Assembly (NCBI RefSeq): GCF_026571515.1
Contig: NW_026855127.1
Span: forward strand, 372,001 to 436,000
Origin: Ruditapes philippinarum
Lineage: Eukaryota
Direction of reading: 5' to 3'
DNA: 64,000 nt
Positions 877-34,388 of the stretch are shown here, one piece after another. The notes beneath the pieces were generated by a model, which saw only the letters and a list, made by a program, of their open reading frames with translations, was not told the DNA's origin and did no database searches. The translations under genes and the position numbers were made by a program. Each line of letters begins with the position of its first letter. Position 1 is the first letter of the stretch.

Positions 877-888
877 AGTGACGTCACT
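877..888. promoter_or_regulatory. CRE-like palindrome AGTGACGTCACT downstream of gene copy 1 (also 9971-9982)
   Basis: Full TGACGTCA consensus at the paralogous position in units A and B; GTGACGTCAC at 24646-24655 near copy 3. Confidence 0.3.
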
Positions 889-1249
889 CAAAGTGTTTTA
901 AAAGAAAAGATTTAGATACCAGTTGAATATGTTCCTGTTATTCCCTTGAGATAGCCTCGTTGTTCGTGGAGTTTTTGTCTGTTGCTTCATTTTGTTTCGG
1001 ATCTATTGTAATAAAAATAGTCAGTTATATTACGTGCATTGACCGTATCTGCCGATTCTCATTATGTTAACTGTTTCTTATTGTTGAACCTGTTTCTGCA
1101 AATATTGATAAATTGTATATTCTCAAAGTTGTTCACAATAATAAACTGGAACCCACACGTTTGTGACGTGACAAAAGTTAACGCCATAGATAGACACAGT
1201 CACTGTCACTCACACAATAATAAAATATTTTTAACAAGTTACATATTAA

Positions 1250-1474
1250 TTACATCCTCCTTGGAAACCGCACGTCCATCTTGAAGTTCACTGATACATT
1301 CCCAATTCTTCCGTCGGCTTTTCCGGTCTCAGTTTGTAGGTTTACACATCTTGCTTGGAGGTGGCTCCAACAATCCATACCTGCCACTGAACAATCAGCA
1401 AATATGTTACTAATAGAACCTTCAACAACGAAACGCCAGTTTACGCAATTCAAAGTTGGTAAAACAATAGCCAT
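1250..1474 (-). CDS. Small 74-aa protein of unrecognised family, copy 1 (MAIVLP...FPRRM)
   Basis: ATG in strong context (AAAGATATGG), TAA stop, TATATAA ~127 bp upstream. Same length, start and stop in three paralogous copies (65-76% aa identity) with no indels or stops, while the flanks carry many indels. Confidence 0.75.
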   Translation of the reverse strand: MAIVLPTLNCVNWRFVVEGSISNIFADCSVAGMDCWSHLQARCVNLQTETGKADGRIGNVSVNFKMDVRFPRRM

Positions 1475-1600
1475 ATCTTTCCTTTGATCAGTAATATCTT
1501 CTCTTACGAAGTCGTCTAAACCGGCTTGATCTTCTTAATTGTCTTCGAGTGCAAGGACTTATTGACAATTCTGTTTGTCTTGTTGTTGTTTCTTTTTGCC

Positions 1601-1608
1601 TTATATAG
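1601..1608 (-). promoter_or_regulatory. TATA box (CTATATAA) of gene copy 1
   Basis: Same motif at the equivalent position in all three copies. Confidence 0.65.
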
Positions 1609-1683
1609 TAATGTTATCTCTGCAGGAGACCAGTATTGACTAAACGTGTGATAGTTTCATAGGAGTCAGTTTACTAAATGTGA

Positions 1684-2587
1684 CAAGCTCAGCGATTTTT
1701 GGCCCGAATGTGATATCTGGGCGAAAATGAGTTATGACTAGTTTGTGGTAGAACAACATCTGCTGAATAGCTGGCAACATTTTTTTTTTAAATACTTGAT
1801 ATTTTATGAAATATTCTAATTTGTATGACATCACCATAACAACAAAAAATAACAATTTAAACTTTTATTGGTATATATAAGGTAGAAATAATTCCACAGT
1901 TATACACAATAAACAAAACATAAAGTTATCATTCATCTTGGTGTAATAAATGTAATATCTTGATATAAAAACTATCATATGTTTTCAATAATCGGTTGCC
2001 ATGGCAACAAAAAAATCATCAAATGCAATATTTTTGCATTTAACATGATTAATTCATCACCAAATTAATGCATATATTATTTTAAAAGACAACACTATTT
2101 AAGACTTTTCAAAAGCAATTAAGATGAAACTGTTTAGCAAAAAGTCATTTTAATTAGGTTATATTTCATTACATTTCAATATCATTTTTTTTCAGCAAAA
2201 TTTGCATTCAAATGGAACGCCGTCGATCATTTCATTCTGAACACAGACAATATGGAATAGACGTTGGCATTTTTCACATTCAATAAACTCCTCAGTGTAC
2301 TGAGATTCGCAGGTATAACAAATACCTGCCTTGATTTCAACGGCGTCATCGCTGTCAGACTCTAGCTGCTTTTGAAGAGACGCCTGTGCTTTTTGTTTAC
2401 GCTTCTGCATCAAAGCTCGTTGCCACTCTAATCGTATTTTCTTCTTAAGCTTCATTTGTACATCTCGTTGGATTTTCTTTTTCAAACGCTCTTCTTTTCT
2501 CTTTTGCTTTTCTCTTTCCTCTAGCTCTTTCTCTCTTTTTTTTCTTAACGCATCTTCCTATAGGCTACCCCAGTAATTGCTTTTAGG
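1684..2587 (-). mobile_element. 3' remnant of a DNA transposon (pogo/Tc1-mariner-like) inserted in the promoter of gene copy 1
   Basis: Absent from the paralogous positions in units B and D, where it replaces ~220 bp (10788-11005). Carries a degenerate transposase-type C-terminus. Confidence 0.6.
2192..2587 (-). pseudogene. Truncated transposase C-terminus: K/E-rich coiled coil plus PHD-type Cys4-His-Cys3 finger
   Basis: CYTC...CEKC...FHIVC...CKFC*, preceded in frame by EDALRKKREKELEEREKQKRKEERL and, after a frameshift, an AITG-like motif. This tail architecture is typical of pogo-like DDE transposases; no DDE core is present. Confidence 0.6.
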
Positions 2588-5500
2588 AATTATGGTTGGG
2601 TTTTTCTGGGTTTTTTTTAAATATTACTTTATCTAGCTATTGCTAAAAGTATACGTGTCACCTGTTGACTCCCAGCACATTTAACTTCTGTGTGCATACG
2701 GTCACAAGGTCCAAATTATTCTAAAAAGGTTTAAACAGGTTATATGACCCATTATAAACAGTTGTAAGAGTTTATGACAAGAGCAGCTAACTGTGTTTGA
2801 AGTCGAATTTCATTGGCCAATCATTAAGTTTTGAATCATCTCTAAAAATTGTTAGTTTGGTTAGAGGATAGTTATAGAAAAGGTCATTTGGACGAGTAAC
2901 ACCTATTTGTCAATGATTCCTTTTTAACCAGAATGAGCTTCTTGAGAACACTTTTTGTATTACTTGTAGCGGTTGTATCACCTGAAGTGAGAAATAATGT
3001 GTCATATGGTAGGCTATACAAGATAGTAAATAATTAATATAATTGTAACCAAAATGCAAGAGACACAGAAAGAGGTTCAGTTATATGGCAAATGAGTAAC
3101 GTTTCGGAAACAGCAAATGACACAAAAAAAATGAATATATATATTTATATATGTGTGTATTCGTATATACACTGTATCAGCATTTTTAAGGCTTACAGGG
3201 CTTTTAATAAGTCCGATATACAAACATTTATAATTCCTTGTCAAGGCATTAAAAATAAAGATGATCAATTTATTTTATATAGTAAACTTATGGGGAGGGA
3301 GTGTTGTTGTGTGCATATGTGCGTGTGTGTGTTTTGAGTAATGTTTTTGTTTGTTTTGTTTTTTTATGTTTTGTCCAACAATATTTTGTGCACGTAGTCG
3401 CATCTAAATTGTAGCTCATTTTACCTCCCCATGTTTGTTTTGAAGAAAGTTAGACCCCCTAAAGACAACCCTGATATTCTGGAGTGTTTTGAAGGATGCC
3501 TAAATAATAGCACACCGTGTGTGGCTTGAACATGAATTTTAACCTTTGTTTTAGACCAACACTGATTAAGAAGGAAGGGATGAAAAGATAAAAGGGTTGC
3601 TTAAGGAAATGCTAGTTTCCAGTCAGTATAAATCAATTGTATATATTATCATACTTGGGGACCTTTCTCCGATATCAATGGAATGGCAATAAATGCCTCA
3701 TTGATTACCGCCGTATAAACACGCAGATCGCTACTTTATTTCCCATTTGAATTTGTTGTACCTTTTTTAAAGGAATATTCATCTTAAAGCCATATATTAG
3801 TAGGAACGTTCGTACTATTCTCATAAAGCCTGCGGTAGGGCAATCCTTGCGCCAAACCATCTGGTTGCTTCGTATTCGTTGGGTGCTTCTCATGAAACAG
3901 GACCTGCGTTTAAATATATTCTCTCATTTTTCTGGCTCTTGTTGCGAGAGAGATATATGTCAGATAAATATTTCCTCATATTTCACTATCTTTATTTGAT
4001 TTTGAAATAAATGAAATTGTGTTAGAAAAGGTTCCAATTTTCTGTCGGAATTACAGTGCTCGATACCTGATTGAAAGATCCTCGAAGTTACTCAGGCAAA
4101 TTAATGACAAAAATATAAGAATGATTTTATGAACTCAAATCACGCTGAAATGACATTTTATTACAGTCCCAGCATGAATTTCTGTATAAATTCTATATAT
4201 CTGGACACCAACTGAATCACCGAGTAGTTTTAAAACAAGTCATGTAACTTGAACAAACCCTGGAAGTTACAATAACAGATATTATGGATATTGTATGATT
4301 GAAACAAGTCTAAGTCATTTATTTGACATGTTCTTTAACGTTTCCAGAGTTCACTTTGACAACAATTGTGAAATCGTAACGATCTGACCTGACCCACGTG
4401 GGTCAAGTTAGGAAACCACCATTTTATTCTTTACAAGGAGACAAGTTTTGTTCCTGTGATTGCCTAGTGTATTTGTTTTGAGGATATTTACAGAATAATC
4501 AATGAAAAACACAAAACGAAGACATGAACATTTTGCCGGTGTCTCCCTTTAAAGCTTGGGTTACGTTCATCGAACGCCGCACTTGTTGATCTTGTTTAAT
4601 ATAGTTTGACTCCAGATGAACCAAAATATTTTAAGAAATTCAAAATTTACAAAAATCTTCTAAAAATGTGAGGTTAGTGAAAAAAAAAGTTTCAAGTTAT
4701 AATGTACTTGTTGTGTGCGAGTAATGACTGATTTTGCCACCGTATTTATACTGCGTAAGTAACGCAGTAAGGGCTATTTTAGCATAATTTGACCTGTTTG
4801 GTAATTTACTTGGATTGTGAGTGACATTTGAAATTTGTAAATTACTTTCTTTGTTCACGTCACAATATTAACTTTTGAATTCCCTTTCAAACCTAATGAA
4901 AATTAGAATTTACATGGAGGCATGCAGCTTTAAATAATACTGTAAAGTGTCTAGAATACAAAACACGAAGGGACATCTGAGGTTTGTGTGACAGGATAAC
5001 CCCACCAAAGAGATATATCGTGCTATAACCGTGTGTTTTGATGTTCTTTTCCATTTGTAAAATAGGCAAAATTAAAAACACGTTCCTTGTTGTCACAATA
5101 TGAGACCAAAGAAAAATGTAACCGATGAACGATCACTGAATGTGTTTCCTTTATATGTCGTCACACAGAGTACCCCCCCCCCCCCCCCCCCAAAAAAAAA
5201 AAAAATAACCAACAACAAAAAACAATCATTCAAAAGTATGCTCTGGAGTGCGGTTGCCTTATACCTGCAGTACAGTTACCGCACCGTGTATGTATGTGTA
5301 TACGATTTAACTCTGACACATTTTCAACAGAAAGGTCCCCAAACTATGATACAATTAGAATAAAAAAGTTTGAGGTTTTAACCGCACCTTTGTAGCCGTT
5401 TGTTTTCATTCTTATGAAATGTATGGTCAATAAAGATATCGTATATGTATGTATTATTGTAACAATATATACTGAAAAAAGACCAATACTGAGTACAAAA

Positions 5501-6069
5501 GTAAAGTAACGGAACTCGATAATACAGATAGTTCATGTGGTACTAAAAGGTTACATATTTATCACATAAGATATCACAAGTTGTAATGTAATAGCACGTG
5601 GGGTAAGTATTTTCGTGTGAGTTTGATTTTTATTTTTTAGGTACAGCTCATGTTATTCAGTGCACGGCTCTGCACCTATTTCGCGAAATCAAAGATATAA
5701 GTTCACTTAGTATGTATGTACATAATGTTTGCTTCGAAAGTTCACAAGTACAAACAAGAAGTATCTTTAAAAAAGATACTCGGTCGAGGTAAATCAGTTC
5801 TTACTTGCATAGATTATTTCGGGATTTCGTATATTTATTTCAAGAAATGCAAGCTCAGTTCGTGCTTAACAATTGCAGTAAATACTTGATATTTTAGAAT
5901 GGCAAGAAATATCCTTTGCATTTTATTTTAGAATGGCCAACGAGATTGACTAATTTTTGACGGCTTTCGTCCAAAAGCAAAAATAGTTGTTATGAAATGG
6001 GACAAAAAGATATTCTATTACATACAGTATTATGTTTGCTATAATGCATTTTTGTCATTAAGATCTAAG

Positions 6070-6232
6070 GATAGCTGGCTGTGTGGGTTCAAACCCCTTA
6101 AAGGGCAACAGCAAGAAACTTTACAGTGATTTAGTACTTTTTGGTCCCATGAATGAATTCGAGAGTGTTTCAATTAGAATACAAGATCCAACAGGATCGA
6201 ACTACAATAAATTCTATATAAACTAAACTAAG
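6070..6232 (+). mobile_element. Degenerate tRNA-derived (CORE-type) SINE fragment
   Basis: GGTTCAAACCC B-box, GCAAGAAACTTTACA core and AAACT-repeat tail; related to the SINE at 28900-29093. Confidence 0.55.
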
Positions 6233-9168
6233 TAATTCAAAGGATATTCCCGGCAAAAAATTATTGTTTTAATGTATAAATAGCCGCAGTTGTTTTGTTT
6301 TGTTTTTGTTGTTGTTGTTGTTGTTGTTGTTGTTTTGTGGGTTTTATTTACCTACTGTTTATTTTTATAAAACTGCATGCAAGGTTTGCTTTAGCTAGTG
6401 TATTTTACTTTGAAATGGATCTTCGTTATTTTTCCTAGGAGTCAAATTTATGAAAATATACCATGGCAATTTTTCAACTGAAAACTTATTAATAAAATTT
6501 TTGAAAAAGCCTATGAAATTTTATTCTAAGACAGGTTTAGAAAGTATTGGTTTTAAATTGAAAGTTCGCATTTTTTCATCATGGCAAATTACTAATGAGT
6601 GTAGGACTTAAAAATCGCTATTTACTGAAATTGAATTTATGCAAATGGCGAATGCAATATGATGGGAAAAAATTGTCGAAAGCCAATTAAACAAGTTTAC
6701 AAAGTAACAAAACTTATTCTTTTACTTTTTGTACATAATTTTAGTTTCTTATCTTAGATTACAAATATTTTCAAATATATCCTACTTAAGGTACCCCCCC
6801 CCCCCCCATTTATTATGTCAGTATTCGAATAGGCTAGAATTACTGTCAACTGCATTGGAATTGTTGGTCATGGGTTCAAACTCCATTATATCATCTTTTG
6901 TTCTTCTTTCTTTTTTTTCTTTTAATATTATTTATATATCTCTAAGATCTTTAAATAAAAAAGAAAAAAATGTCTAATTTTTATGATTACATAATTAATA
7001 TAAATGTAGGTATTATTGGCCAAATAATGCATAACTAAAAATACAGCTCGTTCTCTCTTTTATGCATATAAGATGTTTCTAAAAAAATCTGTATGGTTTA
7101 CTCTAGTCCCTGGTCTGTCATTAAGCACTAAAGTTAAAACTTCAATTATTTAGCGAAGAAGAGGTCATCACATTGTAAGAGGTCTTCCAAAAGATCATTG
7201 AGTGCGATGTGTTGTTTTCAAAATTTGAAATGCACTGTAACAAACACTGTATATCTTTATTGCAAAAAGTACAGTTTTATTTTCTTTTTCGGATGCTGTG
7301 AAATAAATTATGATGTCGTCGCAAGACACCCCTACCAAACTTGCAAGACTTCAAAAACTTCTCTATGGTGACCTATGTCTAAAATACCAGGACAATGCCA
7401 AAAGATTTACATGTGTACAAAATGATATAAAAAAACGAAAAGATTTACTTTTCTCTCTGTTCTCCACGATTTCCCGCTATTTCGGATTTTTATATATAAT
7501 CTTTTAATTAAGATATATACGTGAAAAAAAATGTAAATCTACTCTATAAAAGTTTTTTATATATAATACGTATTCCCTTATCTAGTATGTTCTGAATATT
7601 GATTTATTTAAGATAAACCTTAAAGTTCGCAAAAGGATAATTATTCTATAGGACTCGTCTTTCGTTCTCATCCTTTTTTCATTATGTAAATTTTTTTTGT
7701 TTGTTTGTTGTTTGTTTATTTGTTTGTACGTTATAGTTTTTTTTGGGAATGTTTAACCTAAAGGATTGGTTTTACATCGATGTTATTGTTATAATATAAT
7801 ATTGTTGACATATTATGGTAAGGTAAAAAGTGTAAAATCAGTATTTGTAGATACTGAAGACACATTATGCCTGAAAAATAACTAAATGTTTCCTTCTAAA
7901 GAAAGGGAAGGCATTAGTTTTATTACCTTTGAAAATTTTTTAGAGCATGTTAGATGCTTACCGCCTGAATAAAAGAAGCGCTGAATGTGAAATAATTTGT
8001 CATAAAAGTAGCAAAATGTAAACAAAGTATTATTATTTTCATTGCGAAATACCAAATCAGTATAACTTTACTACTAGTAATAGCAAAAAAGCAATAGAAG
8101 ATTGAGATGGTTCTGGTATTTAACCAATGAGTAACTTTAAAAGCTATAAAGCAGTATCTTCTTTGGAAATGTTTTTATAAAATGCACAAAAGGTAAAATA
8201 ATGTTGTTTCCATAACCTTATGGTAAATTGTCGGAAGATTTGTAACAAGTATGTCTCTTCAATGTAACACGCATGGATTTTGTACGTAATCAGAATAAAA
8301 TATTTCGGAACAAAATATAATACCACTATCTTAACTAGGGTATTAACTGTTTAGCAATTATTTCGCGCATGTACCACAGCTGTTAGTGTTGGAATTTTTC
8401 TTCTATATAGGTACATGTTTGTTGGAATTATTATTTGTCAAAAATGAAACCAAAAAAAATTTGTTAAGCACAGACAGTAGATATACATGTAAAATTTTAA
8501 ACACTTTAAAATGTTTATGAGGGAAAATTGACAATTATATCAGTAGTGAAAAATTTGATTGCATTTATCAATACATTTTGTATATATCTGTATATGTTTT
8601 TAAAGTTATTCAATGCATTTAACCATAGAGTGTATAATCTAAAGAATAAGTTATGTATTTTATAAGTCTTATCTGTGTGACCATACCATGCGATTCTATT
8701 GTTGTAATAAGTGTGACAATGACTCAAAGTCTTTGGACGTATTATACCTTTATAATTATTCATACTTTCACGATATCTGCAACATAGGAAAATGAATAAA
8801 AAGCCGGCAATTCTTTAACAACATAAACACATTTATTTATCTCATATCAAACAACGACGGAATATAAAGCCCTGATTTTGTCCAAAACAATAACTTTTAA
8901 ACAGCATGGAAATATAGGTATGTAATGTGTCATTTAATTAATTGTCATAATAATAAAAAAAACTTAAAGATAAGAAATATACAAAAAATACAGTTTTATA
9001 ATTCTTAAATGATATAAAGACCAAAACAAAATTATTGACAAAAATGTACGAATCACGAATGAATAAAACTAATGAAAACTAATGTTTGAAACTATTTTTG
9101 TCCAAATCAATTACAGTATTTGCAATGAATCGAAACGCATTTTCTTTGGTGATTTCGTAAACTATTAA

Positions 9169-9521
9169 AGATCCTGTATGTTTTGTAATTGAGATTGCAT
9201 ACCACTCTTCATTGAATTATATATGTATGTAATTATGCAAATTTGTCAATTTTCAAACATGGAAGAATATGTAAAATATGTATTGCAAATATTTGTACAT
9301 ATTTAAGGTAATCATTAAATTATATGCATTCATTTCTTATTGGAAAGATTGACTTAGAATTTATAGAAAACTAAATTCTAATTACCTCCCTTTATTTACA
9401 TGAAATATTAAATTCGGTAATATCTTTATAGATGTTTTTTGAAACTTACAATATCGATAAATCTTAATTTGAGCATCATAATTTGTATATAAAACCATAA
9501 AAATAATGCGTTACAGGATCT
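9169..9521. mobile_element. Non-autonomous DNA transposon, Kolobok-like MITE
   Basis: TIR AGATCCTGTA/TACAGGATCT, TTAA on both sides (9165-9168, 9522-9525); empty site with a single TTAA at ~706 in unit A. Confidence 0.88.
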
Positions 9522-10369
9522 TTAAACAGTGTGATTAACCAATTTCGCCGCTCTGGACCAATTTTATCCTGGAATAGCTTACATAATAATGAACACTTAT
9601 CTATATGTAAAGTCTCAAGTTAACATATAATGAACTTCTTCTACACCGATAATTCAAGATTTTACAACATTACAAAGTTCATTTGAATAACAATTATGTA
9701 AAAATCATACCACATCGTAATCACACTATTAATAAATGATATTCATTTAGAATATGAAATTTAAGAAGTATAAAATTTGCTTAATTATTTATCTAAACTC
9801 TGCTGAATAAACCAAACTGAACTTTTCCAACATCAAATTCGGCCCTGTACTTTGTAGAATCGAGCGATTTGTCTTGAAATTCTGCCTCATAATATTTGAA
9901 CAATCTACAACAAATGGTCCTACTAGGTTATTAGACAGTATGAATGCATTGGCTAAATCTATGTAATCGTAGTGACGTCACTCAAAGTGTTTAAAAAGAA
10001 AAGATTCAAATACCAGTTGAACATGTTTCTGTTAATCCCTGAAGAAAGCCTCGTTGTTCTTGGAGTTTTTCTCTGTCGCTTGATTTTTTATTGTTTTTTT
10101 TTTTTGTTTATTGTAATAAAAAAGTCAATTGTATTAAGTGCATTGACCGTGTCTGCCGATTCTCATTTTTTAACTATTTCTTATTGTTGAACCTGTTTAC
10201 TATCTGCAAATATTGATGAATTGTATATTCTCAAAGTTGTTCACAATAATAAACTGGAACACACACATATGTGGCATAACAAAAGTGAACGCCATGAATA
10301 TACAATTTTTCACGACACAGTTACTGTCACTCACACAATTATAAAATCTGTTAACAAATTACATATAAA

Positions 10370-10594
10370 TTACATTTTCCTTGGAAACCATACGTCATTG
10401 TTGATGCTCACTGATACATTTCCAATTCTTCCGTCGGCTTTTCCGGTCCCAGTTTGTAAGTTTATACATCTGTCTTCAAGGTCGCTCCAAGAATCCATAC
10501 CTGCAACTGAACAATCGGCAAATATGCTACTAATAGAACCTTCATGAACGAAACGCCAGTTTACGCCAGTCATAGTTGGTAGAACAACAGCCAT
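10370..10594 (-). CDS. Small 74-aa protein of unrecognised family, copy 2 (MAVVLP...FPRKM)
   Basis: Paralog of copy 1: 56/74 aa identical, 29 nt substitutions in 225, no indels. TATA ~108 bp upstream. Confidence 0.78.
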   Translation of the reverse strand: MAVVLPTMTGVNWRFVHEGSISSIFADCSVAGMDSWSDLEDRCINLQTGTGKADGRIGNVSVSINNDVWFPRKM

Positions 10595-10701
10595 ATCTTT
10601 CCTTTGATCAGTATTATCTTCTCTTACGCAGTCGTCTTAACAAGACAAGTACATGGACTTATTGACAATTCTGTTTTGTATTGTTGTTGTTTCTTTTTGC
10701 C

Positions 10702-10709
10702 TTATATAG
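10702..10709 (-). promoter_or_regulatory. TATA box of gene copy 2
   Basis: CTATATAAGGC on the minus strand upstream of the ORF, conserved position. Confidence 0.65.
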
Positions 10710-11225
10710 TAAAATTATCACAGCAGGAGGCCAGTATTGTTCACTAAACGTGTGATAGTTTCATAGGAGTCAGTTTACTGAATGTGAAATAATCAATTTC
10801 ATCAATATAATTTTAAGAGTAGATTATATTTATTTTTTCTTTTCTTTTCTTTTTCAGGATTGTCGAGCTAACATTTTGTACGAATCCTTATGTTTTCTTG
10901 TTTTCGAAGTATACACGTACTGACAGGATTTTCTTCCTACTGGCCTTGGGCAATACGCTTTTGTATTTAGAATGATTCCTTTGACTGGTCGCCTGAATAT
11001 CTAATGGGAATTATGGTGGGGTTTTTCTTTCTTTTTTAAGTATTACTATGTCTAGCTATTGCTAAAAGTATGCGTTTCACCCGTTGACTCCCAGCACATT
11101 TAACGTCTGTGTGCATACGGTCACAAGATCCAAATTATTATAAAAAGGTTTTAACAGATGACCCATTATAAACAGTTGTAAGCGTTTATTACCAGAGCAG
11201 CTAAATGTTTTTGAAGTCGAATTTC

Positions 11226-11235
11226 ATTGGCCAAT
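11226..11235. promoter_or_regulatory. Palindromic double CCAAT box ATTGGCCAAT (also 2812-2821 and 25597-25606)
   Basis: Invariant 10-bp palindrome in all three gene-bearing units; ~520 bp upstream of the TATA in copies 2 and 3. Confidence 0.4.
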
Positions 11236-11556
11236 CATAACGCTTTAAATCATCTCTAAAAATGGTGTTAGTTTGGTTAGAGTGTAGTTATTTAACAGGT
11301 CATTTGGAAGAGTAAAGCCATTTGTCAATGATTGCTTTTTTCAACCAGAATAAGCTTCTTGAGCACACTATTTGTATTACCTATAGTGGTTGTATCACCT
11401 GTGAGAAATAATGTGTCATATGGTAGCCAATACAAAATAGTAAATGATTATTATAATTGTAGCCAAAATGCAAGAGACACAGAAAATGGTTATATGGCAA
11501 ATGAGTAACGTTTCGGAAAGAGTAAATGACACTTAAAATATTTTGAAAATATTATA

Positions 11557-12195
11557 TGTTATTTTGGTTTTGGAGTGATATATGTGGATATATTACCTGT
11601 TAAGATTTTATATCACCCGAGCCGTTAGGCGAGGGTGATATTTGATCTTGGCAGGTAATATATCCACATATATCACTCCAAAACCAAAATAATAATTTTA
11701 TTACCCTTCCCCTGCCGAGTTTAGACGATTTTTTAAAAAAATCATTGCTGTTTCAAATGAAATGTCGAAATAAGATTCCCTTTAGGGTACCTCTTCGTCA
11801 CAACATGACGTCACATAAATACATGCCGTATTGTTCCCGTACTTAACGAATGTAAACAAGAAAAAAGGAGTAGTCTATTGAACGCACTTGTTTGTAATTA
11901 ATATCAAGCTTTCTCAATGTCATATTTGTTTTTATACTGATGGTAATATGTATCATTACTCTACTTTGGTAAATATTTATCATTTGACAGTAAAAAGTGC
12001 TTTTAAATCGGAATTTACACCGCGTAAAATCGAACCGTACGCGCATCACCTCAGCGCATGTTGTTTACAACGTTGGGTACCAAACGGGGAAATTTAGTGT
12101 GTATATTACCCGTCTGGCTCGGTTATATCAATTTCTTTCGGGTGATCAATATCCAATCAAAAAGGCGGAAAAAATCTGGAAGGGTAATAAATAAT
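11557..12195. mobile_element. Hairpin-headed non-autonomous element (tentatively Crypton-like)
   Basis: Perfect 41-bp outer arms (11559-11599/11652-11692) around CCCGAGCCGTTAGGCGAGGG; second inverted pair TTTATTACCCTTCC (11697)/GGAAGGGTAATAAA (12178); absent at the paralogous site ~3140. Confidence 0.75.
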
Positions 12196-12834
12196 TATAT
12201 ATATATCTGCACTCGTATATACACTGTATTAGCATTTTTAAGGCTTAGAGGGTTTTCAGTCCGATATACAAACATTTATAATTCCTTGTCAAGACATTAA
12301 AGATAAAGATTTTAAATTAATTTAATATAGTAAACTTATGGGGATGCAGTGCTGTTGTGTGCGTCTGTGCGTGTGTGTGTTTTATGTGAAGTTTTTGTTT
12401 GTGTTTTGTATTTTTTCGACAATATTTTGTGCACGTAGTCGCATCTAATTTGTAGCTCATTTTACCTCGCCATGTTTGTTTTGATGTAAAGTTACCCCCT
12501 CAAGACAACCCTGACATTGTTTTGAAGGATGCCTAGCACACCGTGGTTGGCTTGTACATGAATTTAAACCTTTGTTTTAGACCAACACTGGTTTAGAAGG
12601 ATGGGATGAAAAGATAAAAGAGTTGCCTTAGGAAATTCTAGTTTCCTGTAACTTCAATACTTATGTATAAATCAATAGTTAATGTAATACATGAATATAA
12701 ACTGAAAATAACAATGTTTTAATACTGCACCTATATGATAACAATTTTTATCCATAAAGTGACATTGTTTTTCATTTAACAAAGACATGCTTTTATATTT
12801 GCATCACCTTCTGCTTTTATTATACAAAATTTGT

Positions 12835-13012
12835 TTTAGTTTGATTGCAGAGACATTCATTAGCTTATAGACAAACTCTCAAATCATTTGCTGGAACTAA
12901 CCAGTACTGAGCAATGAGTGTAAAGTTTCTCGTCCAAGAAAACGATGTCTTGTGCCTGAGCGACATCGTTAGATAACTAATTTGACACGTTAACCACTCG
13001 GATATGCCGCCT
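12835..13012 (-). mobile_element. Degenerate CORE-type tRNA SINE (paralogous copy also at 18895-19075)
   Basis: Same family as 28900-29093; duplicated with the segmental unit. Confidence 0.6.
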
Positions 13013-16000
13013 TTAGATGTTGATGACGTCACCAGGTAGTTAACACTTCATGCAGTTGTCAGATATTAGTTTTAAAATGTCTTCATTTTTATACATGATT
13101 CAAAATGATGTAATCGTTCGAGTAAAGACAACAAAGTCATTGGTGATTAAGTGCCGACTAGCTACACATGTTATATAGATAAACAAACTAAAACCAAAGT
13201 GAGATTAAACATGGGCGGCGTCAGAATATAAAGAAAACTTAAATTCCTGAAACAACTTTGATAATACTTCTTATCATAATAATTTTCTTTGAATCACCCA
13301 AATAAAACAGTTAATGTCTTATATCTTAAGATGGTCAGAACAAAAATTTTCATCACACAGCCTACAAAACACAAACATTGATAATATTGGAAACAAATAA
13401 GGAATTATTTTGTAGGAAGTATTTTCTTGAACACCATTTTTTGTCTCAAAGAAGCAAGATTAAAGTGGGAAAAAATTGTATAGAACCTCAGGATTTCGGT
13501 CTTTTCCGTATTAAATTGGTAAGGAAATCTACCCTTTCCACCAAGGACATCTGAAAAGGAAACGGCTATTTCCGCTTTACATCGGCAAAAAGGCATCGAA
13601 CTCAATAGTCGATGAACTTAGATTCATTCACGTACAAGTATATCGAAATCGGTGAAGCGGTATACGTAACAAAACGGTCACGAAGCATGATCACACGCTG
13701 CAAAATAAAATCATTATCCACAGTTTATAAAACTCATATTTGCCTTTTCTTTAGAATGAAAAAAGTCTTTTCTTGGGCATAATGTGCTTTTAAATCAATA
13801 ATTGAAAATTATTTTTTTCACAACCTTTGCTGCTTTTAAAGATGAAAAAAATTTCTCACGGATATTTTTGTCCAGAGCGTGACATTCGTAAAAAAGCATG
13901 TAGCTAAAAATCAAATAATATTTCGTCCTCGAAAATATAATAAGATTCTTCATTAAAACTGATTGAATGGGAATCATAGTCATCATCTTTATTAACAAAG
14001 TAATGACAAACCAGAAACATCATTAGGAACTCCGAAATTTTTCATAGATTTCAACGTACCTGCTATGGAAATGTCTTTTTACATTTGTTATTTCTAGATG
14101 ATATGACATGTTATTTATCAAAGAAACTGAATACTAGATTGAAGGTGCGAAATTAATTCGCACTATTTATAAGGAAATTACACATCCTAAAATAGCAACA
14201 TCATCGCGTAAATCACGTTCTACAGAAATGTGAAAATAACATAGGAATAGTTATGCCAAATATGTGCGTAATTTTTTGAGGAAATAAGCAACACATTTAT
14301 AGTAAACGGACAAATATAATATTATAGTATATTAAATTTAATTGACTTGCAAAAACGGCTGCTGCGACATTAAATACTTTTACCATCATTACCAATATTT
14401 CAATTTTAATGGTTGCCTTTCAAAAACATTAATGCAAATAGCGACATGTTTACCATATTGAAGGCTATTTTTTGATTTGTCAATGATAACTTAATTAAAC
14501 TTCTTTAATACTTTATCAAATTGTTTTTCATTTTAGACATTTGTCGAGCGACTTTGTCATAAAAATACTGAAAAGAAGCAGATAAAAAGTGATTCAGGCA
14601 TTATGTATGAGGTAATCAACGTTAATCGGTACTTCTCGAACTAGTCGTTACCTCATAAAAGTCACGTACTTGTTTGGAAAAGCCCATTTAGTCTTTGCTG
14701 TCTGATTTACTTTCAACCACATTATTAACTATGTATTTTGACATGTTCATATTCTAGTTTGTTCTCCAATATTTTTTTCACTTCAATAATTTGTTTAACA
14801 CGTCACAACTTTGCTTTTTTTCGCGTGACTTATTTGTTTTTCACGTCATTTATTGGATTTTTTAAATACTGTGTGCAAACTCTGATGAACAGCCCTATGT
14901 AGGGACAAACCTCTTTATCGGTAATTAGTTCTTCAAAAAGTAAACTTTCAGAATAAATTTTACCTCAGAAGAACCATAACTCTCAGCAACAACCATTAGC
15001 TTTGTGTTTTAGAGGTTGTTGCTATGGAGACGTTTGTACTGCTGCTTTAAATAAGTCCTCTTAGTATTATAAAATACACACATGAGGGTATACAAATTTA
15101 CAATATAAATTCATACGATACATCCCATCATATTACACTCATAGCCTATTCACTAATTATTGTTTCGAAAGGAACATCCAAAACACTTACGTAAAATTAC
15201 AACAATATGACATGTTTGTACTAAATAACCTTAGAAAATATTCACGGAATAGTCCCTTTTGTTCCGGAAGGAGCATCCAAAATACTTACGACAGAACACA
15301 TCAATATGACATGTTTGTACTAAATAACCTTCAAAGTATTTCCTAGAAGCGCATGTCTTTTAAAGATGAGCCATCCTTAAATAGCTATATATAATAACGA
15401 TGTTCTCACCAGCCCTTATATGGATAGCCACTGTGTATATTTGAAAATGAATGGAGAAAAGCACCTTACGTACGATCACAGTTGCCATTAAAACAACGTA
15501 TTTTAGCATTTTAATGTACTGATTCATATTTTCACTTTGCTATTTATTTTTAGATATGTTAAGAAATAATTCTTTGTACACGATACCGAACCCAAGTGAC
15601 TAATGGACAATGTAAAAAGGCGAGAAAATGCTAATATTAGCACCGATTCACTGCATGCACTTTATCCAAAAGTAAGTATCTAAATGAGCAGTCCGATTAT
15701 GATCAGATTAATCATAACACTATCAGCATGTGTAAGAAAATTATTTTAGGAAATAAAACGGGGTGGGGAATGAAACTTCAATTCATTAAGGCATCCGTCC
15801 CCGCACCGTTCGATAGTAAGTCAGTAAAAAAAATGAAAGTTTCACTAAAATCATAAAATGGGTCAAAAACGAATGGACACCAAATCGAAAGAAAGCAAGA
15901 CCGTTTAAAATGTTAAGTGTGGTATGGGTTGACTACAGAAGCGTCCTGATGTCAATTTGTAATGTTCTATAACAAAGAACTCCTGCGTAGGAGATAAAAC

Positions 16001-16937
16001 AAATCCTAATTAGGAGTTTATTACTCCTACATAAGTTTTTATTACTCCTTTGTGAGACAGAATATTATTAATTTGCAACGCTTTTCATTCAAATAATATT
16101 TTCATGAAACAAGAAATGAAAGGAAAGGAAAGGAAAGGAAAAGAATGGAAAGGAAAATAAAAATAAAATGTCTTAAATATCATGACACGTGCTTAACAGC
16201 TTTAGGTCATACGTCAAGGGTCAGTTAACAAGATACAGTTGGAAAATATATGTTTTAATGCTATAGGACAATGTTGAGTGAAGGTGAATAACCACTCAGA
16301 GTAAAGGAAAGGAAAAGGAAATAAAAAATGAAAACAAAAGAATAGATAAATACAGAATCCCTAAAGAAAGCCCAACACGGCAAAATTGAAAATGTTGCAG
16401 GCTCGGTTTGATTGAGCCTGTTCATGGACAGTACTGGAAAGTGCAAGTTACCGTCCACGCCCCCTAGCACCGGCTTAAGCAGAATTCAACATTTAAACGT
16501 GAAATAGTAAAATTTTGAATTTAGAAAATGAAAACTAATAGGGAAATGAAAATAAAAATGTCTTAAATATTTGACACGTGCTTACAAGGCCCAGGAACTA
16601 CGTCAAGGGTCAGTTTACAAGATTTAGCGTTAAATCTTAATTGAAAAAAATGTTTTATTGTGATACAACGTTGTTGTGTGGAAATGAATAATCTTTCCGA
16701 GGATTGGCAAGAAAACTTTTTATGGTTATCGCCCTTGAAACATAATAGGCTTACCTCTTTCATATAATAATAATTCACTCTTCTCACAACACAGACATTT
16801 TTTCCGAAAATTTCATTTTGAAAAAAAAATCATAAAACTATTTTCTTATGCAAGAAGTCTCCTAAAAGGGGAAGAAATTTTATGAAATGAATAAACAAAA
16901 AAATCAATACAAATGCTGCGTACCGAATTTTCAAGTT

Positions 16938-17040
16938 TTTAGTAGTGAAATTTTAACAATTAAGAACCAAAAAGGAAGCGACCGGTAGGGAGAGACCGTG
17001 GGTTCTTAATTGTTAAAATGTTCACTTATTCAATACTAAA
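16938..17040. repeat. Hairpin (19-bp perfect stem ATTTTAACAATTAAGAACC) with GCGACCGGTAGGGAG loop
   Basis: Inverted repeat read directly; only the left half survives in unit C (~22350-22390). Confidence 0.7.
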
Positions 17041-17870
17041 TGACTTAGTGTTTAACTTCATTTGACACCCCTCTATAGAAAGTTGTTTACAATACAATGG
17101 TAGGGGTTGAGGGAGCACTTCATCTGTCAGTTAACTCATTCAATATAGAAATAGGGAATGTAAGTCAGGTGACACAATTATTTACATCGTGTACCGCTGA
17201 ATTTCTGCAATTTTGCAATTTCAGAAAAATATTGTACGTGAATATTTTTTTTGATATCAGCATGAGCACTTCTCTGTATAATGTTGTCGCCGAAGGTTTG
17301 AGGACATTTCAGTTTGAAATATACTGAAATAACTCTTAATTAAACAGTGTGAACAGAGGAATGAACTTTACCTGTGTGCATTTATTGAGAACGTTGAAAT
17401 GACGATCGTCATCCAATTGTGATGTGTACATGTAAGTTCAAATTGACCATAATGTTTGGGTTTGTCAATATTTTCTCAATGGAATTAGAATACAAAACGA
17501 CAATGCAATAAAAAGTGGCAGTAAATGTTGACCGAGTTCTCGCTTAGAATTTTACCAATGTCACTTCGTCCAAATTAGGCGGGGCTACTATATTTAGTTT
17601 ATATTTGCGCATGTCGTCCCAAACTCTTAATTATTAAATATTCGACTAAATAAGTAAGTGACAAAAATTCGCGGTCTACATGATTAAGAAAGGCATATAT
17701 TTTTTAAAAAAACTTGAACGATCACATTGGTCCCCAAATGATGTTAATCACTAAGGACATTTTGAAGGCCTTGAAAACATATGACACATACAATATGCAC
17801 AGCAAAACAAAACTTGGTTGATCTCCAAACTTATTATATACTTCCAATAACTATTTTTCAAAATTCTGTC

Positions 17871-20800
17871 AAATAAAATGTATATGAGGGAAAATTGACA
17901 ATTATACCTCCTAATTTACAAAGTACATTTTCTAGTTGTGAAACATTACATTTCATTTATCATTTTATTTTTGTTAAGTATTTAAAGTAATTTAAGGCAT
18001 TTTACTATATATGTATAATATAAATACTAAATTATGTAATTAATAAGTCTTATCTGTGTGACCAAACCATGTCTATGTTGTAATAAGTGTGACAATGACT
18101 CAAGTCTATGGACGTATGATAATATTTTTACAATATTTGCACCATATCTGCACAATAGAAAAATTAATAAAAAGCCAACAATTGTCTCAACAACATAAAC
18201 ACATTTATTTATCTTATATCAAACAACGACGGAATATATAGCCCTGATTTTGTCCAAAACAATAACTTTTAAACAGCATGGAAATATAGGTATGTAATGT
18301 GTCATTTTATAAATTGTCATAATACGGTAAACAAAAAACACATAAAGATAAGAAATATACAAAAATAAAAACTTTTTTTTTTGCTGTTGCTGTTGTTGTT
18401 TTTGTTTATTTGTTGCCATTTTTTGTGTTTCCTTTAAATGTCTGTGTGTGCGTGTGTGTTTGTTTTTGGTGGTTTTTTTGTGGGTTTTTTTTCGACAATA
18501 TTTTGTGACCATAGCTACATCTAAACGGTAGCTCACTTAACCTTCCCATGTTTGTTTTGAAGAAAGTTAGACCTCCCTAAAGGCATTCAAATAACAATCC
18601 CGACATTCTCATGTATTTAAAAGGATGCCTACATAAGTGCACACCTTGGATCGCTAATACATGAATTAAAACATTTGTTTAAGACCAACACTGGTTAAGA
18701 AGGAAGGGAAATGCTAGTTTCCGGTAATTTCAGTACATATGTTTATGTTACACTTTAATATGAACTGAAAATAACAATGTTATAATACTGCACCTATGTG
18801 ATAACAAATGTTATCCATTAAGTGACATTGTTTGTCATTTAACGAGGACATGCTTTTATATTTGCATCACCTTCTGCTTTTATTTTACAAACTTTGTTTT
18901 AGTTTGATTGCGGAGGCATTCATAAGGTTATGGACAAACTCTCGAATCTTTTGCTGGAACCAACCAGTTCTGAGCAATGAGTGTAAAGTTTCTCGTTCAA
19001 GAAAACGACGGCTTGTGCCTGAGCGACATCGTCAGATAACTAATTTGACACGTTAACCTCTCAGATATGCCCCCTTTAGATGTTGATGATGTCACCAGGT
19101 AGTTAGCACTTCATGCAGTTGTCAGATATTAGTTAAAATCATACTTTTTAAAATGTCTTCATTTTTATACATGACTCTAAATGATGTTATAGTTCGAGTA
19201 AAGACAACAAAGTCATTGGTTATTAGGTGCCGACTAGCTGCACATGTTATATAGATTACCAAACTAAAACCAAAGTGAGATTATATATGGGCGGCGTCAG
19301 AATATTAAGAAAACTCAAATTTCTGGAACAACTTTGATAATACTTCTTATCATAATAATTTTCTTTTATTCACCCAAATAACACAGTTAATCTCTTATAT
19401 CTTAAGATGGTCAGAACACAGCCTTCAAAACACAAACATTGATATTATTGAAAACAAATAAGGAATTATTTTGTAGGAAGTATTTACTTGAAGGCCATTT
19501 TTGTCTCAAAGAAGCAATATTAAAGTGGGAAAAAATTGTATAGAACCTTAGCATTTCGGTCTTTTCCGTATTAAATTGGTAAAGGAATCTACCCTTTGCG
19601 CAATGTACATCTGAAAGGAATCGACTATTTCCGCCACATATCGGTAAAAAAGGCATCGAACGGGCTTTTAAATCAATAATTGAAAATTACTTTTTACACA
19701 CCTTTGCTGCTTTTAAAGATGAAAATATTTTCTTACGGAAATTTTTGTTCAGAGCGTGACATTCGTAAAAAAGCATGTTGGTAAAAAAACAAATAATTTT
19801 TCGTCCTGGTAAATATAATAAGATTCTTCATTAAAACTGATTGAATGGGAATCACAGTCATCGTCTTTATTAACAAAGTAATGACAAACCAGAAACAGCA
19901 TTAGGAACTCCGAAATTGTTAAAAGACTTCAACGAACCTGCTTGGGAAATGTCTTTTTACATTTGTTATTTCTAAATGAAATGACATGCTATTTAACTAA
20001 GAAACTAAATACGAATTGAAGGTGCAGAATAAATTCGCACCATTTATAAGGAAATTACACACCCTAAAATAGAAACATCATTGCGTAAATCACGTTCTAC
20101 AGGAATGTGAAAATAACATAGCAATAGTTATGCAAATATGTGCATAATCTATTGAGGAAATGAGCAACGCAGTTATAGTAAGTTGACATTTATAGTTTGT
20201 AGTTAATTCAATTGAAAGAAACGGACTTGTAAATGCGGCTGCTGGGACATTAAGTATTTAAAGTTTCAATACAAATATTTCAAGGAAAGTGGTGCCTTTC
20301 AATGTGATTTATGCGAATAGCGACATGGTTACCATATTGAGGGTGATTTTTTTATTATAAATAATAACTAGTACAACTTCTTTTATACTTTATCAATTAG
20401 ACATTTTTCGAGCAACAATGTCTTATGATACTGAAAAGAAACAGATAAAATGTGATTCATTTAGTATTGGTTAACCAACATTAACTGGGCACATTTTGAA
20501 ATGGACGTTACCTTAACAAAATTCACTGAATCACATTCGATTTTTGGATAAGCCAGTTTAGCCTTTGCTGCCTGATTAAAATTTCAACCCGGTTATTATC
20601 TTTATAATAGACATGTTCATATACAAGTTTGTTCTTCATGTCACTAATTTGTTTTTCACGTCTCTTATTTAATTTTTCAAATACAGTGCAAACTCTTTTG
20701 AAAGGCCCTTTATCGGTTACCAGTTTTTCCAAAAGTAAAACTTCAGAATAAATTTCAATTTTTAAGAACCATAACTCATAGCAACGACTAAAAGCCTTGT

Positions 20801-23220
20801 GTTTCAAAGGTTGTTGCCAATGAGATGTGTACTGCTGCTATAAAAACAGTCCGTTTAGTATAATAAAATACACACATGAGGGTTTACAACTTTGCAAAAT
20901 AAATTTATACGATACAACCACTCATATTACACTTATAAAAATGTTCAAGGAATAGTCCCTCTTGCTCCGGAAGGAGCTTCCAAAATACTTACGTAAGAAC
21001 ACGACATGAATGTGACATGTTTGTACCAAATAACCTTCAAGGTATTTCCTTAAAGCGCATGTCTTTAAATCAAAATGTGTTATTCTTAGAATAGCTATAT
21101 GTGTACGATGTTCTCACCATCTCGTATATGGATAGCCACTGAGTAAATTTTAAAATAGTTTGGAAAAGCACCTAACGTACGCGCACAGTTGCCATTCGCA
21201 GGTGTTTTTTTTATCGTCACTTCACTATTTTTTTTTTTCGATATGTTCAGAAATAATTATAAGTACCTGCGGAACCTAAGTGACGTTTGGACAATGTGCA
21301 AGGCGAGAGAATGCTAATATAAGCACCGATTCACCGCGTGCGCTTTATCCAAAAGAAAAGTGGGCCAGCCTTCCTGGATTTTAAAAAAAAACGAGCAGTC
21401 CGATTATGACCAGATTAATCATAACAGTATTACCCTGTGTAAGAATTTTTTTAGGAATTAAAAAGGGATGGGGAAGTAAACTTCAAATGATCACTAGCCT
21501 GTTTTATGACATTATTTATAAATGCATCCGTGTCTGCACTGCTATTCAGTTAGTAAATATTTTTTAAAGTTGCCCTAAAATCATAAAATGAGGTAAAAAC
21601 GACTGTGTCCAAATTAAAAGAAAGCATGGCCATTATACATGTATGGGCTAACTACGAAAGCGTCATGGCGCCAATTTATAGTGTTCTATAAAAATAACTT
21701 CTACGTGAGAGATAACAAAAACCTAATGAGGAGTTTATTAATTACTCCTACGTAAGACTTAATTACTCCTTTGTAAGACTGAACATTATAAAGTAGCAAC
21801 GAAGGAAGGAATGGAAAGGAAAACGAAGAAAAATGAAATAAAAGAAAAAAAAAGAAAGGAAAGTAAAGAAAAGAAAGAACAGGAAAGGTAAGCAAAAGAG
21901 ACAAAAGGAAAGGGAAATGAAAATAAAATGTCTAAACTATTTTGACACGTGCTTAAAAGCCCCAGTTCATACCTAAATGGTCAGATTTTAAGGTTCAGTG
22001 TTAAATCTTAATTGAATAAAATGTTTTAAAGTTATATAACTTTGATTTGTGAAAATTAATAATCATTCAGAGGTTTGGCAAGAAAATTTTCTATGGTTAT
22101 CTCTTTTGAAACATAATAGGCTTACCTCTTTCTTATAAAAATATTTCCCACTTCTCGCGATTATTCTTTCCGACAATTTTATTTTGAAAAAGAAACCATG
22201 AAACTATTTCTTACGCAAGAAATCTCAGAGGTTTAGTTTTCAAAAGGAAAGTATTTAATGAAATATTTGAAGGAACAAAAAGAAATCAATACAAAAGCTG
22301 CGTACCGATTTTTTAATTTTTAGTGTTATGATTGTGTTAGTGTTGATTCAGTGACATTTTAACAATTAGCAACCCAAAGAAGCGACCAATAGATAACTTA
22401 TTTAGAGTTTAAAATTCATTTGACAACGCTGGAATGCCTCCAGCCTATAGAAGTTGTTTACAATACAATGGTAGAGGTTTAGGCACTTAATCTGTCAGTT
22501 AACTCATTTAATATATAAAAAGGAAACATACGTCAGGTGACACAATTTTTGCATCGTGTACCGCTGAATTTCTGCAATTTTGCAATTTCTGAAAAGTATT
22601 GGATGTGAATGATGTTTGTGATATCAGCATGAGCACTTCTCTGTATAATGTTGTCGCTGACGGTTTGAGGACATTTCAATTGATAGATACTGAAAAAAAA
22701 CTCTTAAACAATGTGTACAAATGAATGAACTTTGTGTGCATTTATTGAGAATCGTCATCGATTTTGTGATTTGTATATGTTAGTTCAAATTGACCATAAT
22801 ATTTGGGTTTGTCAATATTTTCTACATGGAATTAGAATACAAAACGCCAATGCAATAAAAAGTGGCAGTAAATGTTGACCGAGTTCTCGCTTAGAATTTT
22901 ACCAATGTCACTTCGTCCAAATTAGGCGGGGCTACTACATTTAGTTAATATTTGCGCTTGTCGTCCCAAACTCTTAATTATTAAATATTCGACTAAATAA
23001 GTAAGTGACAAAAAATCGCGGTCTGCATGATTAAGAAAGGCATATATTAAAAAAAATCTTGAGCGATCTCATTGGTCCCCAAATGATGTTAATCACTAAG
23101 GACATTTAAAGGCCCTGACAACATGTGACACATACAATATGCACAGCATAACAAAACTTGGTTGATCTCCAAACTTATTATATACTTCCAATGACTACTA
23201 GTATTTCTCAAAATTCAGTC
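17871..23220. repeat. Segmental repeat unit C (~5.3 kb, gene deleted)
   Basis: 17880-18370 matches the 3' flank (8515-8995), then jumps to sequence matching 12350 onward; 18440-23220 matches 12360-17870. Confidence 0.88.
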
Positions 23221-24723
23221 ATATAAAATGTATATGAGGGAAAATTGACAATTATACCTCCTAATTTACAAAGTATATTTTGTAGTTGTGAAACATTTGA
23301 TTTCATTTATGATTATATTTCTGTTAAGTATTTAAAGTAATTTATGTCATTTTACTATATAATGTATAATATAAATAATAAATTATGTAATTATCAAGTC
23401 TTATCTATGTGACCATACCATGTGATATATATTATTGTAATAAGTGTGACAATGACTCAAGTCTATGGACGTATGATACCCATCATTATTCATATTTTTA
23501 CAATATTTGCACCATATCTGCACCCTAGGAAAATGAATAATAAGCCAACAACTCTCTTAACAACATAAACAAATTTATTTATCTAATATCAAACAACGAC
23601 GAAATATATAGCCCTGATTTTGTCAAAAAATAATAACTGTAACAGCATGGAAATATACGTAAATATATAATATGTCATTTGGTAAATTGTCGTAATAAAC
23701 AAAGAACTTACAGATAAGAAATATATTTGTAATACACTTTTATAATTCTTAACTGATATAAATATCAAAACAAAAATATTGACAAAATGTAAAATCATTA
23801 ATGAATAAAACTAATGAAAACTAATGTTTGAAACTATTTTTGTCCAAATGAATTACAGTGTTTGCAATGAAACGTAACGCATTTCCTCTGGGGATTAGGT
23901 AAAACAATAAATCGGTGTAGTTAATCGACTGCGCCGCTCTTGAGTCTTGACCAATTTTATTTTGGAATTGCTTTCAATTGAACACTTACCTATATGTAAA
24001 GTCTCCTAGGTACATAAAATGAACTAAAACACCAAGTCCACATGAATAACAATGATGTAAAAGTCACATCACATTGCCAAAGAAATACTATTACTTAGAT
24101 TTTGATATGAATACTTTCCATCGTGTTCATAATATTTATTTAGAGTGCAAAATTAAAGTATATAGGTTAGCTTGATTTTTTTATATCTGAATACTGCGAA
24201 ATTAACTAAATTGAACTTTTCCAACATCGAATTCGGAACTGTTTTTTGTTGAGTCGAGCTATTTGTCTTGAACATCTGCCAAATAATATATGAACAATTT
24301 ACAACAAAGTGTCGTGTTAGGCAATACAAATACTTGGGAAATATATGTATGACGTCGCTGAAATCGTTTAATAAAAGAAAAGATTCAGATTGTGTGTTTT
24401 TCTTTGTTGTTTTTTTTTCTGCCATTTTTTTTTATTTTTTCGTTGTTTTTTTTTCTGTCGTTTCAGGTTGATCCGGATCCATTGAAATAAAAATAGATAG
24501 TTTTGACACATGAATGAAACGTATCTGCAGATTTTCATAATGACTATCATTTTATTGTTAAACCTGTTGTAAAACTATCTGCAAGTGATGATAAATTGTA
24601 CATTCTCAAAGTTGTTCACAAAAATAAACTTGAACACACGCGCATGTGACGTCACAAAACTTTACGTCATGGATATACATTTTTACATCACAGTTACTGT
24701 TACTCACATAATGAATAACACAA

Positions 24724-24948
24724 TTACATTTTCCTTGGAAACAGAAACTCATTGTTGAAGTTCACTGAGACATTTCCAATTTTTCCGTCGGGTTTTCCGG
24801 TCTCAGTTTGTAATTGAACACATCTCTCATGAAGATTGTTCCAGGAATCCATACCGGCGACTGAACCATCGGCAAATATGCAACTGGTGTCACCTTCATC
24901 ACAGAAACGCCTGTTAACGCCCGTCATACTTGGTAAAACCACAGCCAT
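24724..24948 (-). CDS. Small 74-aa protein of unrecognised family, copy 3 (MAVVLP...FPRKM)
   Basis: Paralog: 52/74 aa identical to copy 2, 48/74 to copy 1. TATA ~120 bp upstream; AATAAA (plus-strand tttatt 24551-24556) ~170 bp downstream of the stop. Confidence 0.8.
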   Translation of the reverse strand: MAVVLPSMTGVNRRFCDEGDTSCIFADGSVAGMDSWNNLHERCVQLQTETGKPDGKIGNVSVNFNNEFLFPRKM

Positions 24949-25067
24949 AGCTTTTGTTTGATCAGTTGTGTTTTCTCGTACGAAATCTTTTAAACCGTCT
25001 CAGTCTTTTCAACCGTCTCTGAGGACAAGGACTTGCTGACTTATCGGTTTTGTTTTGTTTTCTTGTC

Positions 25068-25075
25068 TTATATAG
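25068..25075 (-). promoter_or_regulatory. TATA box of gene copy 3
   Basis: CTATATAAGAC on the minus strand upstream of the ORF, conserved position. Confidence 0.65.
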
Positions 25076-34280: not shown

Positions 34281-34388
34281 CAATAATCAATAATTTAATT
34301 AAACAACTAAAGTTCAACCTCTGCAAAGCCTCAACCTTTGGGTTCTAGAAAGGTTTGACTTCTCTCGTTCTGGAAAGGTTTGACTTCT

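Follow-up and report, generated by a model that had tools for sequence, protein, structure and literature searches.

Three tandem copies of a small open reading frame

The DNA analyzed here is a stretch of 64,000 nucleotides (nt) from Ruditapes philippinarum (assembly GCF_026571515.1, contig NW_026855127.1, positions 372,001 to 436,000; hereafter the window). It carries three tandem copies, A, B, and C, of an open reading frame (ORF), which an earlier reading made from the letters alone (the sequence-only reading) had taken for a family of intronless microprotein genes that it could assign to no known family. All three ORFs were found again on the minus strand, together with the features ascribed to them (Table 1). 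The ORF is 225 nt long in every copy, with the same start and stop positions. The identities among the encoded proteins, which consist of 74 amino acids (aa), were 76% (A/B), 65% (A/C), and 70% (B/C), matching the earlier figure of 24-35% aa divergence, and 44-45 residues are invariant among the three copies. The invariant blocks MAxVLP, VNxRF, EG, IFADxSVAGMDxW, RC, LQTxTGKxDGxIGNVSV, and FPR[KR]M had already been listed, and all of them hold in the alignment of the three copies.

Table 1. Coordinates of the ORF copies and of the features associated with them in the window (pI, isoelectric point; UTR, untranslated region; X1, a sequencing run described in the text)
Feature	Position	Strand	Properties
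Copy A ORF	1250..1474	-	74 aa + TAA stop; pI 8.5
Copy B ORF	10370..10594	-	74 aa + TAA stop; pI 5.0
Copy C ORF	24724..24948	-	74 aa + TAA stop; pI 5.1
Copy A TATATAA	1601..1607	-	133 nt upstream of ATG; conserved in three-way alignment
Copy B TATATAA	10702..10708	-	114 nt upstream of ATG
Copy C TATATAA	25068..25074	-	126 nt upstream of ATG
Conserved block A	731..1683	-	Promoter, 5' UTR, ORF, and 3' region; reference block
Conserved block B	9827..10787	-	83.5% identity to A
Conserved block C	24221..25151	-	71% identity to A
X1 contig-covered stretch	9522..10602	-	Depth 3-8, colinear; covers end of 5' UTR, copy B ORF, and long 3' region

The start codon lies in the context AAAG(A/C)T ATG G in all three copies, with G at positions -3 and +4, and the nearest in-frame upstream stop is found at codon -21 (A), -15 (B), and -18 (C); both features had been read correctly from the sequence. 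The predicted 5' UTR contains no ATG in copies A and C and one in copy B, which is located 60 nt upstream of the start codon and is out of frame. The TATA box proposed upstream of each ORF proved to be conserved, but its distances from the ATG (Table 1) differ from the 108-127 nt given at first. The approximately 100 nt upstream of the TATA box are conserved to the same degree as the ORF in the three-way alignment. A scan of the promoters for HSE, NF-kB, ISRE, MRE, ARE, AP-1, p53, and HRE elements revealed none that was common to all three copies. The Kyte-Doolittle maxima over 19 residues were only 0.4-1.1, and the hydrophobic run at the N-terminus extends over about 5 residues. These maxima indicate that the proteins have no transmembrane segment, as had been supposed.

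Two ORFs were also seen on the opposite strand: one of 68 aa (1281-1487, plus strand) over copy A, and one of 108 aa (10221-10547, plus strand) over copy B. The number of stops in the antisense frame is 0 in A, 1 in B, and 2 in C, and the frame is thus unconserved. The antisense ORFs are probably a by-product of the sense frame.

Conservation of the reading frame

The ORFs were compared with their flanks in a three-way alignment that included 505 aligned flank columns. No indel event was found in the ORF, whereas the aligned flanks contained 15 (5 in the 5' flank and 10 in the 3' flank). Approximately 6.7 events would be expected in the ORF, and the Poisson probability of observing none is approximately 0.001. 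The indel-free zone is composed of the 225 nt of the ORF and 48 nt upstream. Only the sense frame is free of stop codons in all three copies; each of the other five frames is closed in at least one copy, with up to 7 stops. The frame had been described as uninterrupted despite the divergence of the proteins, and these counts bear this out.

A neutral simulation was performed with substitutions only, using the observed counts on the three branches (21, 8, and 32) and the observed transition/transversion ratio. The ATG, the stop codon, and the open frame were kept in all three copies in 1.7% of the trials (p = 0.017). Among the trials that were still open, 39 ± 2.8 residues were invariant, compared with the 45 observed (p = 0.017). 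The ratios of nonsynonymous to synonymous divergence (dN/dS) obtained by the NG86 method were 0.62 (A-B), 0.44 (A-C), and 0.49 (B-C), with dS values of 0.21, 0.48, and 0.35, respectively. On the branches, 20 synonymous and 41 nonsynonymous changes were counted, and 79% of the changes would be expected to be nonsynonymous (binomial p = 0.022). In addition, the GC content of the ORF was 42-43%, compared with a background of approximately 31%. Taken together, the openness of the frame, the lack of indels, the simulation, the dN/dS ratios, the branch counts, and the GC content argue that selection has kept this frame. On this point, the proposal of a real small-ORF family agrees with the frame-specific openness, the absence of indels, and dN/dS ratios below 1.

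Possible transcription of the copy B region

Reads from four runs were placed on positions 8000-12700, that is, on the region of copy B. Three of them were RNA-seq runs of raw reads (polyA, random-primed, and cDNA, with 7-11 million reads sampled from each), and their depth over 9570-11140, where copy B is located, was essentially zero. The fourth run, X1, is dated 2015. No library type is recorded for it, and its being RNA is a guess. The X1 contigs were colinear with the genome over the ATG, the stop codon, and the 3' block of copy B, and one of them spans 10255-10437. The unique DNA flanking this stretch (8157-9098 and 10669-11453) had an X1 depth of 0, and the upper edge of the coverage at 10602 falls between the TATA box and the ATG of copy B. 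One X1 contig joins 9522 to 9164 and skips the repeat piece 9165-9521. Because the ends of the skipped piece are TT..CT, the joint suggests an insertion polymorphism and not an intron.

The pattern of coverage in X1, a library of unverified type, is hard to reconcile with random genomic DNA. It probably represents an unspliced transcript of at least 1.1 kb, given a library that is only guessed to be RNA. The colinear contigs through the ATG, stop codon, and 3' region of copy B agree with the description of the genes as intronless. No splice joint was found at the stop codon or in the 3' block of copy B. That the ORF is only the last exon of a known larger gene had been named beforehand as a case that would overturn the proposal. 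Mapping of RNA, which the sequence-only reading had recommended, gave a divided answer for this copy: the unspliced stretch in X1, guessed to be RNA, is in line with the proposal, but the zero depth in the three RNA-seq runs is not. Other small libraries from several studies contained 29-50% of the words of this stretch, and one run recorded as RNA, a fish-gut metatranscriptome, contained 10% of them. Under some conditions the gene probably does give rise to a transcript, and it is silent in ordinary samples; its expression is certainly not constitutive.

In the same region, the repeat-like pieces 8000-8156, 9099-9569, and 11454-12238 were covered on both strands in each of the three RNA-seq runs, at a depth of 20-200 and with numerous mismatches and loose ends. 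These pieces are expressed high-copy elements.

Alleles in other data

Three 74-aa JGI "hypothetical proteins" encoded on contigs of 1.5-2.1 kb match copies A, B, and C, and a word-indexed search returned no others. P0004 is closest to copy A, from which it differs by C10G. P0005 is closest to copy B, with the differences R14C, G32V, R72M, and K73N, and P0001 is closest to copy C, with C23S, G28C, Q45E, and K56E. All three copies are therefore intact in independent data. The X1 contigs contained variants of the copy B ORF at 10449, 10483, and 10500, which correspond to G49E, D38N, and G32V, respectively; all of them alter the protein. Scans of metagenome contigs by protein pattern and by DNA pattern yielded no match.

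Homology and structure searches

The proteins could not be assigned to any known family, in agreement with what had been stated from the sequence. The best match in Pfam was FlhE (E = 0.13, 12.8 bits against a cut-off of 25), and no family match was thus obtained. The best E values were 0.14 in NCBIfam and 0.46 among the PDB sequences, neither of which is a match, and the best cosine in the ESM Atlas was 0.79, which lies in the chance range. A HMMER profile searched against 1.84 billion representative proteins retrieved only the cluster of the family itself and two bacterial repeat proteins, P0002 and P0003. The latter were rejected as spurious because their scores were inflated by summation over 6-20 near-identical repeats; a single repeat would not be significant. 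A full-text search of the literature for the peptide strings gave no match.

Structure prediction had also been put forward as a check, and it gave no confident fold. The mean predicted local distance difference test score (pLDDT) of an AlphaFold2 model based on six sequences was 38, too low for a fold search, and the one tentative helix (residues 36-49) had a pLDDT below 50.

Genomic context and copy number

Self-comparison of the window showed that the ORFs sit in a block of approximately 950 nt, conserved three ways, inside a mosaic tandem duplication. Copies A and B are spaced by 9,120 nt, which fits the repeat unit of approximately 9-11 kb suggested earlier, but the spacing of B and C is 14,354 nt. 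An extra duplicated unit lies between B and C (12363-18359 versus 18444-23725). The segment 17874-18365, which normally precedes the ORF block, there adjoins the equivalent of 12363 directly, and the unit at 17874-18444 is missing approximately 3.2 kb, the ORF block included. The 10 kb to the left of the window (L020, G000:C3614:362001-372000) repeat the window segment 3639-8436 at 73-88% identity, partly twice, and the array therefore reaches beyond the window. This region contained further material of the inter-ORF units; the ORF was absent. The ORF had been regarded as the cargo of the amplified unit. It is present in some of the units, but since it is absent from others (at 17874-18444 and left of the window), this description is only partly right.

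Whether the 1.4-Gb assembly was searched with the peptide, with the profile built from six sequences, or with the DNA block of 961 nt, only these three places matched. The family is not a transposon because only 3 copies exist genome-wide, all of them in this array. The family also shows neither the many dispersed copies nor the protein similarity expected of a transposable element or a viral gene, and viral contigs yielded no relative. Membership in a transposable element had been named as a finding that would refute the family; the protein, profile, and DNA searches, with 3 copies only, contradict it. The 64-kb window contains no ORF of at least 130 aa and no Rfam match.

Upstream of its promoter, copy A has a stretch of approximately 900 nt (1683-2586) that copy B does not have. 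This stretch includes an ORF of 97 aa (2192-2485, minus strand) with a PHD-finger-like C-terminus (Pfam PHD, E = 1.2e-4, 22.5 bits, cut-off 24), which is probably a fragment of an inserted element. Elsewhere in the window, an inverted repeat (33915-40343 versus 47752-41327) with arms of approximately 6.4 kb and 97.9% identity was observed. Each arm contains a tandem array of a 145-nt unit (289-nt higher-order unit) in approximately 10.8 copies, at 35340-36887 and 44778-46329. Positions 55821-56008 consist of 188 N and represent an assembly gap or masked sequence.

Interpretation of the ORF family

On balance, we favor, with some reserve, the reading that the three ORFs are paralogous, taxonomically restricted ("orphan") protein-coding genes whose frame has been kept under weak selection. 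Each gene would be self-contained, with a proximal promoter of approximately 100 nt that includes TATATAA, a 5' UTR of approximately 85-105 nt, a first AUG in good context (except for the extra upstream out-of-frame ATG in copy B), the 74-codon ORF, and an intronless 3' region. If translated, the product would be a protein of 8 kDa, and its location is probably cytosolic or nuclear because it has no long hydrophobic stretch. Removal of the initiator Met before Ala is a general rule, and it would be expected here because Ala follows Met. The copies originated by segmental tandem duplication long ago; the duplication is considered old because the dS values of 0.2-0.5 are similar to the divergence of the flanks. 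Later selection would have acted mainly against disruption of the frame and on the approximately 44 invariant residues, with the remaining residues turning over fast. Transcription appears to be off in ordinary tissue samples and is probably limited to a stage, tissue, or stimulus. As a guess made with low confidence, the product might be a small regulator or binding protein that acts inside the cell and is induced conditionally, and not an enzyme or a secreted peptide.

Several observations weigh against this reading. The proportion of variable columns in the ORF (57/225, 25%) is close to that in the 5' flank (54/187, 29%) and the 3' flank (67/234, 29%), and indels may arise more readily in the AT-rich flanks than in the ORF, a possibility that would soften the indel argument. 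Between A and B, changes are no more frequent at the third codon position than at the others (11, 9, and 9 by position), and the constraint on the family is for this reason weak, not strong. Every allelic difference seen is protein-changing, and some of those in copy B (for example, G32V, R14C, and R72M) fall on residues that do not vary between the paralogues. Such differences are compatible with evolution that is relaxed or diversifying, most of all in copy B. To these may be added the near-zero depth at copy B in the RNA-seq runs, the absence of an RNA record for X1 and the other libraries in which the locus is represented, the outcome of the profile search, and the low pLDDT. The near-equal density of substitutions in ORF and flanks, the exclusively nonsynonymous polymorphisms, the silence of the three runs, and the lack of a homologue and of a confident fold equally speak for a chance open frame in non-coding DNA that was carried along by segmental duplication, as a transcribed or silent proto-gene, and the significance of the dN/dS ratios is only p ~0.02. 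By our own estimate, DNA of 31% GC gives approximately one ORF of at least 74 codons per few kb. Nevertheless, we judge a chance frame to be unlikely. The probabilities of frame retention and of an indel-free ORF are jointly very low, even with several candidate ORFs, and openness is confined to one frame with a raised GC content. Moreover, the TATA box and the start context are conserved at the right distance, and the alleles of all three copies in other data are intact.

It is more doubtful still that selection acts on a non-coding RNA or a regulatory block that happens to contain the ORF. On this view, conservation peaks in 100 promoter-proximal nt and in approximately 75 nt of the 3' region and not in the ORF. 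In the TATA region 6/36 columns are variable, and in parts of the 3' block 6/36 and 10/45; these parts are conserved at least as well as the ORF. The possible X1 transcript of more than 1.1 kb would also be mostly non-coding. However, a non-coding unit would leave unexplained both the absence of indels from 225 + 48 nt in which precisely one frame has no stops and the deficit of nonsynonymous changes, and the window has no Rfam match. A further alternative, in which the 74-codon ORF belongs to a larger gene as one of its spliced exons, could draw, by reading of the sequence alone, on a donor-like GTAAT that overlaps the conserved stop codon in all copies (ATG|TAATT) and on an acceptor-like TTTGCAG conserved approximately 170 nt downstream. 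It is very improbable, since the X1 contigs run unspliced through the stop codon (10255-10437) and the 3' block, and no joint was seen there in any run. In-frame stops lie 15-21 codons upstream of the ATG, which is itself conserved, the window has no ORF of at least 130 aa, and no other exon-like match was found in the genome.

A possible relationship to IAP antagonists

A specific function was also considered for the family, namely that of IAP antagonists of the Reaper/Hid/Grim (RHG) kind. In such a case, an Ala-Val/Ile-Val-Leu exposed by removal of Met would dock in the groove of a type II BIR domain and release caspases. The present genes resemble RHG genes, which are of small size, lack introns, lie in clusters, have TATA promoters, and are not expressed in normal samples; the N-terminal MA[VI]VLP of the present proteins is invariant. 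The genome contains at least 150 BIR matches above the Pfam cut-off, obtained from 404 first-look candidates, and these represent a very large IAP expansion. Among the loci encoding BIR domains, L010 (G000:C4347:208991-212185) has an ORF (1210-2586, minus strand) for a protein of 458 aa that contains two BIR domains and the beginning of a third. The groove residues of a BIR in this protein appear to resemble those of XIAP BIR2, and XIAP-BIR2-like grooves would be present among the BIR matches of the genome.

The N-termini following Met are A-V-V-L in copies B and C and A-I-V-L in copy A. The IAP-binding motif is A-[KTVI]-[PAE]-[FEISY] (PMC8620624), and positions 1 and 2 fit it, but Val and Leu at positions 3 and 4 do not, so that two of the four positions fail. 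In addition, RHG genes have not been found outside insects (PMC8620624), which counts against the idea, as does the lack of a Pfam match. For a GH3 or Trp-block helix, the structure prediction gave the one low-pLDDT helix at residues 36-49. A complex prediction with residues 2-74 of copy C, residues 283-375 of the L010 ORF (a type II BIR domain), and Zn gave a score of 0.04, which lends no support and is evidence neither for nor against. A Pfam search of the genome for Smac/DIABLO returned no match, a negative that is uninformative. We therefore regard it as highly improbable that these proteins antagonize IAPs. It is just as remote a prospect that the family is a molluscan analogue of Reaper/Hid/Grim, consisting of induced microproteins that engage a diverged BIR groove. 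If true, they would be the first IAP antagonists that are neither of insect origin nor Smac.

Comparison with known systems

With the RHG proteins of Drosophila (reaper, hid, grim, and sickle), the family shares the small size of the proteins, the clustering of the genes, the sequence of Met-Ala followed by Val or Ile, the apparent transcriptional silence outside specific conditions, and the setting in a genome with many BIR proteins. It differs from them in that there is no sequence similarity and positions 3 and 4 (Val, Leu) deviate from the motif. The likeness to the bacterial proteins P0002 and P0003 is confined to short local stretches, K/R-ADGRIG-x-x-SV and VLP-x-x-V-x-x-W-R; these are large unrelated proteins with 6-20 near-identical repeats.

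If the three ORFs are real orphan genes, a previously unannotated gene family would be added to the genome. They would also show clearly how the frame of a small orphan gene can outlast long divergence while being only weakly constrained, and examples of this sort are useful for calibrating small-ORF annotation and studies of how young genes evolve. The locus would gain importance if a condition that induces it or a partner that it binds, such as a BIR protein, came to light; at present, it is one among many lineage-restricted small ORFs.

Tandem orphan small-protein genes are commonly reported in invertebrate genomes. The likeness of the present family to such genes is descriptive and implies no homology. 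It consists in a short single-exon ORF that lacks homologues, in paralogues arranged in tandem, in weak purifying selection with a fast turnover of residues, in probably restricted expression, and in the ease with which such genes are missed by annotation. The family is therefore a set of tandem orphan small genes of a familiar sort and not a new kind of system.

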